Both the position numbers and the translations under genes were made by a program. Below are positions 1,125-62,746 of a DNA stretch of 64,000 nt, piece by piece. The notes beneath the pieces are model-generated. The model had not been told where the DNA came from, made no database searches, and saw only the letters and a program-made list of their open reading frames with translations. This DNA comes from Octopus sinensis (lineage: Eukaryota), in NCBI RefSeq assembly GCF_006345805.1, contig NC_043020.1:1612001-1676000 (forward strand). The letters run 5' to 3'. Within the stretch, counting starts at the first letter, position 1; every line of letters starts with the position of its first letter.

Positions 1125-1375
1125 GTGCTTGATATGGCCGCCAGGTAAGGTGAATGCTTTGGTGTGACGAATCCAAGACCTTGTCTGGGTGTGTCACCCC
1201 GAACGACATAGTATTTACCGCAGAATTTGCCAGCAATGTAATAAATCAGAGATTCGTCACTAATAAACGCATAATCATGATTATCAACTAATATCAACAT
1301 CTCTTTCTCTTTGGTCACTACTGGGCCACTGGCCATGATGTCACCGATCCTTTTGTAATCTTCATTGGAAACATT
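1125..1375 (-). CDS. Gene A exon 12 (S2: NVSNED...[12 protein letters not shown]...[13 protein letters not shown])
   Basis: tttcag| acceptor and AC|GTGAGT donor; 251 nt, phase 0-2. Confidence 0.93.
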
Positions 1376-59800: not shown

Positions 59801-62746
59801 TGATGGCGTCGTCGACAGATATACATAGTCATCTTCCAATGTATACGTGTGAATGTCTGTATATCGGTCACTATGTGTGTGAATATATATATATATATAT
59901 ATTATATATATATATATATATAACCAAGAAAAAAGCAACAAGAATGGATTAGTAGTTTAGTACAATTGTTTCATACTAAGAGCAATTTTATTTGAAGCTG
60001 CAAATATTGCAGCAAATACAAATGTCCAGTATTCATAAGCTAAATCACATATATGTTTTCCAGACATCCTAGAGGGTTTGATTATCCTCATGAAGTATTA
60101 GGAGTGAGTTCTATGAAATTTAAAGTCAAATTATTAGCAGACTTAAAATGCTTTCTAATGATGCACAGTTTTATAAAAAGTTTTTAAAAAGATTTGAATT
60201 CATTGGAATTCACTTGAATCTTAATTGTTTTTTTGCTGAATATATATATATATATATATACACTCAAGCACACAAATATATATATATATACACACTTTAT
60301 GTACTGACTTTTGTTCTGTTAAACATTACGATCGTTTAGCTTCCACAATACACATATAAACTGAATACACTTAGATTAATTACCACCATAATACCACTCG
60401 GTCGCTGTACCGATTCTTACTTTTTTCTCTGTTTAGGAAACCAACGACAACATGTTTATGGTTGATCCAGAAGAGGTTGTCGATCGAAAATACGATATAT
60501 TCCGTGTAGATGGCTACGAAGAGGAGCCCACCTACAAGCGAATAGGAGAGTGGTGTTCTGAAGTAGGTTTAGTTTTCATGGTGACGCCTATAGACGCAAG
60601 GGATGTCTTTCCCAACGCTTTACCTGGATTGGGTAACGCAACCCTAAAGGTTGGAACCGTCGTGGTGAGTAGTCTTGAATCGTCATTGTAGTGTTTTTTT
60701 TTTCTTTTGCCCTCTACTGTTTATTTGTTTCAGTCATTAGACTGCTGCTGTCCTGGGGCACCGACTTGAAGGGTCTTGAAATCGAACCGCAGTACAGATG
60801 TTTGTTTAAACGCATGAAACTCATTCTATTGGCCTCTGATGTCGACTGCTGAGGTATGGCGACATAAACAAACCAACAATGATTGTCAAACGATGTGTAA
60901 AGATACACACATATACACACATGTTTGAATATGTGTGTATAAGTAAATAAAATAAAGTTTCCCTTCTCAAGGATGTATTTGATTAGATAAAATGCTTAAA
61001 TAGTCTTAACTATTAATTTTGCCATGAAGGGAAACCACTGGGCCATCGGATTTCCAAGATATAGCCCCCCACCCATCATCACAGATCCCCCTCTATGTTT
61101 AACAGAAGGCAGTTTGGGTCAAATGCTTCTTTTGGCTCTCTCCATACGTATACTCGGCTGGTAGTCAGAAATAAGGTAAAGGAGGACTCATTCGAGAAAA
61201 CATTCTTCCACTGCTCTAGGGACCAATTCTGTAGGTTATTACTCCATTCTAAACACTTTGCGACGTTTGTTTTTGAAAGTAGTGGTTTTCTGATTGCAAC
61301 TCTCCCGTGAAATCCGGTTTTATGCAGCTCCCAGCGAACAGTTTTTGTGGAAACAGGGTTCTCGAAGTGGTATTTAAGCTCTGCAGTAATTTTGGGGGCT
61401 GTACTTTTGTGATTCTTTCTAACAATTCGCGTAAGAGTTCGACGGTCCCTATCTGAATGTTTTGATTTTCTTCCGGAGTTTTGTTTCGAAGAGGAGGGTT
61501 TTTTTCCCTCTTTCTCAAAGGCTGTCATTACTTTCGAGATAGAAATCCTTAATACATCAAACATTTCGGCTGTTTTTGTTATGCTAGCGCCTGCCATATG
61601 AGCACCAACAATTTGACCTCTTTGAAAATCCGACAGATTTGTCATTTTAATGAATTTTAATTACCTTTTTCTGGTGATATCTGAAAAGAAACAACAATTT
61701 TAGCAAAACAATTTAAGCGACACTAATGATAAATAAAAAAAAAACATAAAAATAACAAGCTTTTGATGGTTTTATAGATATTTCAAAATTACGATGCTAG
61801 TTTTTTTTCCATTTTTTGTCCAACCTCTGTATTTATATATATATGTTTATGTTTCAGCTGGCCCCATACATCACTCGAGTAAACGGTACCGGATGGGAAG
61901 GATTTTGTATCGATATACTCAATGAAATGAGTAGTACCATGAACTTCAAGTAAGTCGGTTACTTCACTTATACAATTTATGTATGTGTATATGTGTATGT
62001 TTGTCCGTCTGTCTGTCTTTCTGTCGGTCTGTCTATATGTATGCATGTATGTATATTAAACCAAAACGAAACAAAAGCCACCTGTTAACAAAACGAGGTA
62101 AGTTCACGACCGAGATTGTTTGAGGCTTAGACAAATAGAAAGATTAGTAATTATGACGTTTCGGAGATTGTCCTTTTTCAGAGTAACTTGTAGAGCGGAA
62201 AGAAGGTATTAGAAATGAGGAATAGCCGAGCAATCGGAGCAAAAGTACCATCCTCGTACATATATGCACACAGCAACCACATTAACCGCAAATCATATTC
62301 TGCTGTCTTCATAAAGAAAACACATTAGAAAGCACATAAGCAGAAAAAGTAGTTCTAAATACAAGGACTGCATTTCCAGTAAAACACTGGTTCAGTCTGG
62401 TACTGTGCTTAATATTATCAACTTTACCCCTTCCTTGTGCTGAACCCACCGAACTTTGTGGTCGAAGTTTATAATCGTTCACTCAACCTGAGAATTATTA
62501 ATTAACAAAAATGTTATAATTAAAAATCTATTATAATTTTATACAAGAATTATTAATAATAAAAAAACGAATAGATCTGTTGTTTCGCCTTTATAATTTT
62601 ACAGACATATCGATCCCTTATTTATCTCCTTTGTTCATTTTTCTCCTTTCAGTTATGTACTGCAAGAACCTGAAGACAAGATGTTCGGTGTTTATGATAA
62701 TGCAACACATAACTGGACTGGAGTTATAGGAATGGCATACAACAAC
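50714..62746 (+). CDS. Gene B: paralogous iGluR/IR-like gene, 9 exons, 3'-partial; carries an apparent 1-nt frameshift in exon 2 (pseudogene or assembly error)
   Basis: Exons of 130,155,273,185,183,135,228,92,94 nt with the same intron phases as gene A; [10 protein letters not shown] and FG...WTGVIGM S1 motifs. Confidence 0.88.
51264..51418 (+). pseudogene. Gene B exon 2 with a 1-nt deletion near 51343-51346
   Basis: tccgcag| acceptor and A|GTAAGT donor. The 5' half (ILVEKTLSW) and 3' half ([17 protein letters not shown]) each match gene A exon 2 but in different frames; as written there is a TGA at 51362-51364. Confidence 0.75.
51704..51743 (+). ncRNA. Minimal hammerhead-like motif (family P1) in gene B intron 2
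   Basis: CUGUAGA-A-GAGC-GUAG-GCUC-GAAA-CGUA-AAAGAC; helix I is mismatched in this copy. Confidence 0.5.
52638..52910 (+). CDS. Gene B exon 3 ([17 protein letters not shown]...IIIFTDGTY)
   Basis: gtttcag| acceptor and A|GTAAGT donor; 273 nt, phase 1-1; N-terminal-domain-like GV.GIV motif. Confidence 0.88.
53091..53330 (+). mobile_element. SINE family A, full length
   Basis: Matches 25110-25338. Shorter family A relics also occur near 654-790, 8660-8880, 23910-24210, 38716-38850, 42806-43160, 49390-49560 and 50250-50395. Confidence 0.82.
53415..53969 (-). mobile_element. Second copy of the same mariner-like family
   Basis: [27 protein letters not shown]; end reads cagggtg; shares ~170 bp with 39820-39990. 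Confidence 0.78.
55154..55193 (+). ncRNA. Minimal hammerhead-like motif (family P1) in gene B intron 3
   Basis: UCUUU-CUGUUGA-A-GAGC-GUAG-GCUC-GAAA-CGUA-AAAGA; 5-bp helix I, predicted cut after 55187. Confidence 0.62.
55358..55665 (-). mobile_element. SINE family B, 5'-truncated
   Basis: Tail and middle match the other family B copies. Confidence 0.72.
56768..56952 (+). CDS. Gene B exon 4
   Basis: tacgcag| acceptor and TGT|GTAGGT donor; 185 nt, phase 1-0. Confidence 0.85.
58244..58426 (+). CDS. Gene B exon 5
   Basis: ttttatag| acceptor and TCA|GTAAGT donor; 183 nt, phase 0-0. Confidence 0.87.
58985..59020 (+). ncRNA. Minimal hammerhead-like motif (family P2) in gene B intron 5
   Basis: GUUU-CCGACGA-A-GAGC-UCU-GCUC-GAAA-CGUU-AAAC; lies in a repeat at ~58915-59125. 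Confidence 0.55.
59540..59674 (+). CDS. Gene B exon 6 (ITDNYLLQ...EMEFD)
   Basis: ccttcag| acceptor and GAC|GTAACA donor; 135 nt, phase 0-0, open frame. Confidence 0.72.
60437..60664 (+). CDS. Gene B exon 7 (...IGEW...[19 protein letters not shown])
   Basis: gtttag| acceptor and GTG|GTGAGT donor; 228 nt. Confidence 0.92.
61079..61829 (-). mobile_element. Tc1 transposase 5' fragment with one terminus
   Basis: [29 protein letters not shown] and FSNESSF motifs; terminus TA|cagaggttggacaaaaaatgg at 61829. Confidence 0.9.
61858..61949 (+). CDS. Gene B exon 8 ([30 protein letters not shown])
   Basis: gtttcag| acceptor and AA|GTAAGT donor; 92 nt, phase 0-2. Confidence 0.93.
62653..62746 (+). CDS. 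Gene B exon 9 ([12 protein letters not shown]...[11 protein letters not shown])
   Basis: ctttcag| acceptor and AAC|GTAAGT donor; 94 nt, phase 2-0. Confidence 0.93.

Follow-up and report, generated by a model that had tools for sequence, protein, structure and literature searches.

What kind of receptor is encoded by two strongly diverged genes that lie head-to-head in a 64,000-nt window of Octopus sinensis chromosome CM016882.1, and are both of them intact? The window, which is the whole stretch of DNA analysed here, holds gene A on the minus strand and gene B on the plus strand, with start codons at 23066 and 50714 in hand-built models; 12 exons of A and nine of B lie inside it, and both genes extend past its edges. 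An initial annotation had proposed this divergent pair, which the GT-AG models and, for A, a RefSeq match bear out, and had rightly suspected a cephalopod source; it read both genes as variant ionotropic receptors (IRs) of the IR93a kind. The analysis below points elsewhere. A and B are probably ancient head-to-head paralogues within a Spiralia-wide group of ionotropic glutamate receptors (iGluRs) of the AMPA, kainate, Delta and Phi (AKDF) type, nearest to Delta, and would encode full-length subunits, with gene B under constraint.

Both models were assembled from open segments, a relaxed paralogue-guided tblastn search with a collinearity check, and enumeration of splice sites, all of which are GT-AG. 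Exon 1 of gene A (76 nt, 22991–23066, on the minus strand like all exons of A) starts with ATG 23066, the first base of the gene, encodes a signal peptide and ends at a phase 1 donor, ATCG/GTAAGA. The amino-terminal domain (ATD) begins with 'LLVED...' in exon 2 (156 nt, 20065–20220) and continues through exons 3 (264 nt, 18692–18955), 4 (188 nt, 16133–16320), 5 (189 nt, 15158–15346) and 6 (114 nt, 13579–13692) to exon 7 (228 nt, 12436–12663), which carries its end and the linker. The first ligand-binding segment (S1) occupies exons 8 (101 nt, 10066–10166) and 9 (94 nt, 8429–8522) and ends in exon 10 (325 nt, 6272–6596), which also holds the pore loop. Exon 11 (218 nt, 3557–3774) encodes the M3 motif SYTAHLVAF and the start of the second segment (S2), and exon 12 (251 nt, 1125–1375) continues S2 up to the donor AAGCAC/GTGAGT. 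The model is letter-for-letter identical to the first 734 residues of RefSeq XP_036368967.1 ("delta-1-like", O. sinensis, 846 aa): the start is the same, exons 2–11 each match, and exon 10 corresponds at 100% to residues 471–578. Gene A is intact and already annotated, and because of this identity it also validates the way in which the models were built. Position 1 of the window falls within the last intron of A; no compatible exon 13 was found at positions 1–1124, and that exon, with the end of S2, M4 and the C-terminal tail, begins about 215 nt to the left of position 1. A word-indexed protein search with the core of A missed XP_036368967.1 although the protein was present in the collection, and an exhaustive HMMER search with exon 10 alone as the query found it.

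Exon 1 of gene B (130 nt, 50714–50843, plus strand as throughout B) starts at ATG 50714, encodes a signal peptide and ends at the phase 1 donor CTATAG/GTGCGT. A second in-frame ATG lies at 50621, 93 nt upstream, and would add an Asn-rich low-complexity extension; ATG 50714 is preferred because a signal-peptide-like segment follows it directly. The ATD continues from exon 2 (155 nt, 51264–51418) through exons 3 (273 nt, 52638–52910), 4 (185 nt, 56768–56952), 5 (183 nt, 58244–58426) and 6 (135 nt, 59540–59674) to exon 7 (228 nt, 60437–60664), which again carries the ATD end and linker, and S1 follows in exons 8 (92 nt, 61858–61949) and 9 (94 nt, 62653–62746). The gene then runs on past the window, exon 10 not being found in 62747–64000. 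Exon 2 extends from a good acceptor at 51264 to a strong donor, TGCA/GTAAGT, at 51418, and has 155 nt against the 156 nt of its counterpart in A. Its 5' part ("ILVEKTLSW...") and its 3' part read in different frames, the switch falling between 51336 and 51361, and the 3' part holds the conserved ATD cysteine at the correct spacing from "GVAGIVV". The likeliest site of the 1-nt deficit is a GGGG run at 51355–51358. The sole in-frame alternative, an exon 2 of 69 nt, was rejected as the main model: its donor is weak, it drops 29 residues including the conserved cysteine, and it takes no account of the strong GTAAGT donor at 51418 or of the near-equal lengths of 155 and 156 nt.

With the exon 2 deficit corrected for, the intron phases after exons 1–9 are 1,1,1,0,0,0,0,2,0 in both genes, and in a global alignment the aligned columns of every A exon fall within the same-numbered exon of B. 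Eight introns had initially been reported as shared in position and phase; the positions stand, whereas the phase of intron 2 does not agree if the 155-nt exon 2 of B is read literally. The equal lengths reported for exons 7 and 9 (228 and 94 nt) were found again. When exons 10–12 of the Octopus bimaculoides orthologue of B are included (319, 218 and 251 nt; exons 10–12 of A have 325, 218 and 251 nt), at least 11 introns are in common. This match is far beyond chance, yet it is expected of any pair of paralogues. Over 443 aligned residues A and B are 30% identical, with 39–46% in S1 and 15–31% in the ATD exons, in keeping with the earlier description of their N-terminal domains as highly diverged. 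Over the ligand-binding and transmembrane domains (LBD and TMD), A and the B orthologue share 37% identity and are mutual best matches. In a neighbour-joining tree of 468 LBD and TMD columns, A and B are sisters with 97% bootstrap support, and the motifs "FPN..PGLGN.TLKVG" and "GF[VI]TPKHS" are unique to the two. In O. bimaculoides the two orthologues share a chromosome and are likewise head-to-head, with B on the minus strand near 25.41 Mb and A on the plus strand from 25.478 Mb. Together these results support the proposal that A and B are an old duplicate pair, present head-to-head in two Octopus species.

In Pfam searches, Lig_chan-Glu_bd (cut-off 30 bits) matched A at 95.6 bits and B at 53.9 bits, and Lig_chan matched A at 82.8 bits; with A by itself as the query, ANF_receptor scored 12.5 bits, under its own cut-off. 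The best PDB matches of A are GluA (AMPA) chains, at about 1e-41 over LBD and TMD. The A/B lineage is isolated, because exon 10 of A yielded just five matches at E ≤ 1e-10 among 1.84 billion representative proteins. Its closest relative outside O. sinensis and O. bimaculoides is a 152-aa fragment of 50% identity (P0002/P0152, from Logan contigs of about 1.2 kb), possibly the orthologue from another cephalopod. The nearest full-length relatives are mollusc and nemertean proteins from Pecten, Haliotis, Nucella, Elysia, Batillaria and Lineus, which are 25–31% identical, align through the ATD and are automatically named "delta-1-like" or "kainate-3-like".

The AMPA, kainate, Delta and Phi references for the tree were drawn from the alignment published with PMC6307864, and the sole IR reference was a scallop IR25a-like protein (P0117), the tree being built without IR8a, IR93a, IR76b and the mollusc IR-A to IR-D. 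A and B fall inside a Spiralia-wide clade with 87% bootstrap support, which also has two flatworm proteins; AMPA, kainate, Phi (a clade of its own at 98%), deuterostome Delta and the scallop IR25a-like protein all fall outside. Class hidden Markov models (HMMs), built without A or B, gave the same ranking for both genes: spiralian 507 bits, Delta 310, kainate 278, AMPA 213 and Phi 132 for A, and 332, 224, 191, 146 and 105 bits, respectively, for the B orthologue. All members of the spiralian clade score higher with Delta than with kainate, and with kainate than with AMPA. Positions 45–842 of the clade profile align with the full-length chains of GluK3 (443 bits), GluD2 (432 bits), GluK2 (431 bits), GluD1 (427 bits) and GluA2 (418 bits); because the alignment starts at position 45, the N-terminal region of the clade is a genuine iGluR ATD, and the full-length N-terminal domain claimed at the outset is indeed kept. 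The Phi class was considered because the nearest deuterostome matches come from Phi-bearing phyla, and was rejected: those matches are Delta proteins, and Phi gave the lowest BLAST and HMM scores. A and B are therefore filed as divergent cephalopod members of a protostome (spiralian) Delta-like group, with the exact link to Delta left open. The initial annotation had named membership of a conserved synaptic iGluR class with 1:1 orthologues as an outcome that would count against it, and half of this came true: the proteins group with a recognised and widely conserved class, the protostome Delta-likes, in which A and B are long-branch, lineage-specific duplicates and not 1:1 orthologues. Andouche et al. 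2021 reportedly classified 312 mollusc iGluR and IR proteins, O. bimaculoides included, and that set very likely includes the orthologue of A. Protostome Deltas form the earliest Delta branch in maximum-likelihood and Bayesian trees, are poorly represented in molluscs, and are of unmeasured function (PMC10861852, PMC6307864).

About 395 residues precede S1 in A and about 415 in B (including a one-residue placeholder for the frameshift), and these align to iGluR ATDs. The Pro, Thr and Arg of S1 are retained ("GPLTLTYNR" in A, "GPITLTAHR" in the B orthologue), and so is the ligand triad of Arg and Thr in S1 and Asp in S2, the residues by which the alpha-carboxyl and alpha-amino groups of an amino-acid ligand are held. 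The acidic residue that binds the alpha-amino group is Asp in A and B, as in Delta and in the glycine sites of NMDA receptors, whereas AMPA and kainate receptors have Glu. At alphaF, the clade reads G-[ST]-N, A S-D-K and B G-S-T. The ligand motifs defined for Delta (PMC13648236), S[SA][LV] at alphaF and WD at beta10/alphaI, were not found: these two sites read S-D-K and S-D in A and G-S-T and M-D in B, and only the Asp is in common. The motif F.N.F..LGN.TL[KR]VG before S1 is a signature of the spiralian clade, and the FPN..G element that had been taken for a sign of IRs belongs to it and does not speak for IR identity.

The channel segment from M1 through the pore loop to M3 is recognised in A by Pfam and is seen for B only in the O. 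bimaculoides orthologue; M4 is shown for A alone: the RefSeq protein has it, encoded just beyond the window edge. The position equivalent to the Q/R site holds Lys in A ("SLKEG", codon AAA at 6276–6278, minus strand), Met in the B orthologue, N, E, H or S in the clade, and Gln in the 152-aa fragment nearest to exon 10 of A. With Lys at the Q/R position followed by Glu at +1, and with the M3 gate motif SYTANLAAF changed to SYTAHLVAF, A has the atypical pore that had been remarked on earlier; the B orthologue reads YYTAFLAAI, and both gate motifs are recognisable yet altered.

On this anatomy, A and B would each be a full-length subunit with a signal peptide, an ATD, an S1/S2 clamshell and M1-pore-M3, plus M4 in the case of A. 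The most likely mechanism would be that of a tetrameric channel, in which binding of a small amino acid or GABA-like ligand (GABA, gamma-aminobutyric acid) closes the clamshell and pulls M3 open. Edited GluA2(R) and GluK2(R) offer an analogy, on which the genomic Lys at the Q/R site of A would be expected to keep both Ca2+ permeability and conductance low and possibly to favour heteromeric assembly. AAA codons are common targets of A-to-I recoding in cephalopods. A bolder proposal, on which we would not lay much weight, is that A, B and a neighbouring third paralogue, gene C, represent a cephalopod-specific, fast-diverged offshoot of the protostome Delta-like receptors and form heteromeric excitatory channels for a ligand other than glutamate, either GABA or another small amino acid. 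Such channels might act in peripheral sensory tissue, with the pore Lys of A setting conductance and Ca2+ permeability and perhaps being subject to A-to-I recoding.

Several observations weigh against the placement and function outlined here. Sisterhood of the spiralian clade and Delta received 0–4% bootstrap support in the neighbour-joining analysis, and vertebrate kainate, Delta and AMPA chains all receive nearly the same score from the clade profile (443–418 bits). The reference set was small, with a neighbour-joining tree and one IR reference. A and B have long branches, and part of their mutual attraction could be an artefact, although 'TPKHS' and 'FPN..PGLGN.TLKVG', unique to the two, speak against this. 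Given S-D-K and not G-S-T at alphaF, the ligand of A may be unconventional. Finally, an oyster Delta gave no currents in oocytes (PMC10861852). To these are added, for gene B, a reading frame that is broken in the sole O. sinensis sequence available, the lack of any O. sinensis B protein in the searched collection, and an M4 exon that was not found in the gap-ridden O. bimaculoides flank.

These last three points are those on which gene B might be judged a pseudogene, its exon 2 frameshift being real and the gene undergoing decay, either in O. sinensis or across octopuses. Read literally, the 155-nt exon 2 leaves B frameshifted, with an in-frame stop in that exon and an intron 2 phase unlike that of A. 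The only relative of B found was "glutamate receptor U1" of O. bimaculoides, a 396-aa protein that is 93% identical to B exons 7–9 and begins at a Met within exon 7. In that species (CM046624.1) the B orthologue is annotated as two truncated genes of 303 and 396 aa, at 1–5595 and 10001–19804 of the extracted segment L001. The truncations, however, coincide with N gaps and donor read-through: the 303-aa product ends by reading through the exon 5 donor, and the 396-aa product by reading through the exon 12 donor, into stops in the introns, and exon 6 falls in an N gap (L001 6031–7899), which accounts for the split annotation. Segment L001 begins where window position 54460 has its counterpart and so excludes exon 2. 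The 303-aa upstream model fits intact exons 1–5 (about 309 codons) better than a shortened set. Apart from exon 2, every exon of B is open. In the comparison with O. bimaculoides, exons 4, 5, 7, 8 and 9 of B are open, their canonical splice sites are conserved, and they give Ks 0.159, Ka 0.026 and a Ka/Ks (nonsynonymous over synonymous divergence) of 0.16, with about 0.10 for ATD exons 4–5. Because the corresponding value for A is 0.19, B is as constrained as A, its ATD included. The deficit also adjoins the GGGG homopolymer, probably a typical site of long-read error. Decay of gene B is thus unlikely, and comparison of the two genomes indicates that B exists as a real gene, under constraint, in both octopus species; because its exons are constrained, the break in exon 2 is most likely either an assembly error at the homopolymer or a lesion of very recent date.

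The remaining doubts concern what the two proteins do. Were A and B variant IRs, they would be chemosensory channels of the suckers or olfactory organ that work with an IR25a-type co-receptor, and their long branches, 30% identity, atypical pore and gate, and tandem clustering of the kind typical of chemoreceptor families would be readily accommodated. A gastropod study has GluD grouping next to IRs (PMC12837371), and the IR25a-like protein, too, scores best against the Delta HMM, so that the groups may be neighbours. Against this, A and B cluster among full-length spiralian iGluRs with 87% support while the sole IR25a-like reference stays outside, Delta is the nearest classical class by HMM, and the Arg/Thr/Asp triad and a complete ATD are kept. 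Variant IRs usually lose one or more residues of the triad as well as the ATD, which IR25a and IR8a keep. Ka/Ks values of 0.16–0.19 denote ordinary constraint and not rapid chemoreceptor turnover, about three genes are no large expansion, and Sepia is credited with only three IRs in a cited summary. The IR label is accordingly not supported and very improbable. Just as improbable is the possibility that A and B are not working channels and, like vertebrate GluD1/2, mainly use their ATDs to act as trans-synaptic organisers or signalling scaffolds. That Delta is the nearest class, that the pore Q/R position of A is occupied by a positively charged Lys, that the M3 gate motifs are altered and that the oyster Delta passed no current (PMC10861852) would all suit such a role. 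The tested invertebrate Deltas, however, are GABA-gated channels (PMC10861852, PMC13648236), purifying selection acts on the ligand triad and on the pore-loop architecture, and the ATD is the least conserved region, which would be unexpected if function were centred on it. Full-length, channel-forming subunits of the spiralian Delta-like group therefore remain our preferred interpretation of A and B.

The divergent starts are separated by a 27.6-kb intergenic spacer (23067–50713) that is rich in microsatellites and transposon remnants and is without any additional iGluR exon; in O. bimaculoides the start-to-start distance is about 55 kb. A compact shared bidirectional promoter is unlikely because of these distances, and the suggestion that A and B are co-regulated is weakly grounded. 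The spacer contains an assembly gap of 100 N (31853–31952), with a microsatellite on one flank and unique sequence on the other. It touches neither gene, and therefore no reading frame rests on it. The adjacency of A and B across the gap is supported by the same order in O. bimaculoides, the O. sinensis sequence alone giving no proof of it.

A third paralogue was not found inside the window. Outside it, gene C lies 5.5 kb past the 3' end of A on the same O. sinensis chromosome, about 6 kb to the left of the window (39163–43617 of segment L002, CM016882.1) and tail-to-tail with A. It encodes a 769-aa product with Lig_chan-Glu_bd and Lig_chan domains, its M3, S2 and M4 belong to the same spiralian type, and conservation of the last exon in O. 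bimaculoides (segment L003, 39802–40719) is 87%. The suspicion of a larger cluster is thereby supported, A, B and C apparently forming a small Octopus cluster of at least three genes.

The window has a GC content of 25–43% and is very dense throughout in microsatellites (TATG/CATA, GT/CA, AAT and similar; for example at 14300–16100, 20450–21000, 25400–27500, 30200–31850 and 33400–34800), which give rise to hundreds of spurious long open reading frames (ORFs). The introns of A and B also have several families of short interspersed repeats in common, 80–95% identical at the translated level, as between 53141–53327 and 5057–5243; between 62970–63150 and both 9790–9963 and 4418–4598; between 63402–63503 and 4278–4379; and between 51686–51833 or 55187–55288 and 12720–12867. 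Such repeats were the sole matches in a tblastx comparison of the two loci. In intron 7 of gene B, a 188-aa ORF on the minus strand (61079–61645) matches Pfam HTH_Tnp_Tc3_2 at 54 bits and represents the N-terminal helix-turn-helix half of a Tc1/mariner-type transposase; because it is truncated, it is regarded as a transposon remnant.

The A/B pair is real yet fairly ordinary, tandem paralogous receptor genes with the same introns being common. What is new here is the exon structure of B through exon 9, the frameshift of B in the assembly, and the pore Lys of A. Gene B is mis-annotated or unannotated: in O. bimaculoides its models are split and truncated, and in the assembly of O. sinensis it carries a frameshift. 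Alone among the branches of the Delta family, the protostome Delta-likes have never had their function measured, and whether such excitatory receptors for GABA or amino acids exist in protostomes has been stated as an open question (PMC10861852). At least three diverged Octopus paralogues, differing in the pore (Lys in A, Met in B) and in ligand-pocket residues, offer a natural comparison set.

The closest known counterparts of A and B are the spiralian Delta-likes of Pecten maximus (XP_033737179.1), Haliotis asinina (XP_067672970.1 and XP_067672022.1) and Lineus longissimus (XP_064635760.1), which belong to the same clade, are about 840 aa long and have a full ATD; this group is probably that of the oyster CraGluD described in PMC10861852. 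Common to all are IGP in S1, [KR]P at alphaF, xD at beta10/alphaI, GLGF near the end of S2, LGNxTL[KR]VG before S1 and GLIE[KR].. WW before M4. The Octopus proteins differ in their low identity to these (25–31%), in the pore loop of A, which has K-E and not x-Q, in the H and V changes of A within SYTANLAAF, and in S-D-K (A) or G-S-T (B) where the clade has G-[ST]-N at alphaF, and Octopus has the head-to-head duplicates and a third gene.

GluD1, GluD2 and the GABA-gated GluDs of starfish and acorn worm are the best-scoring classical HMM class for A and B and, like them, have a full ATD, an Asp and not a Glu for the alpha-amino group, and a TLKV-type linker before S1. What GluD has and A and B lack are the ligand motifs 'WD' and 'S[SA][LV]' as well as an 'SRM' following M3, and identity is only about 27–30%. 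AMPA and kainate receptors (GluA1-4, GluK1-5) share the overall architecture, the Pro, Thr and Arg of S1, the G-S-T that B has at alphaF, and PDB scores near those of Delta; A and B nevertheless score lower with their HMMs, have Asp and not Glu at 705, lack 'ERM' after M3 and fall outside both clades. IR25a and variant IRs resemble A and B in being AKDF-derived, divergent and clustered, and IR25a keeps its ATD too. The scallop IR25a-like protein, in contrast, lies outside the A/B clade and has no preference for the spiralian HMM, and A and B differ from variant IRs in retaining both the ligand triad and a full ATD.

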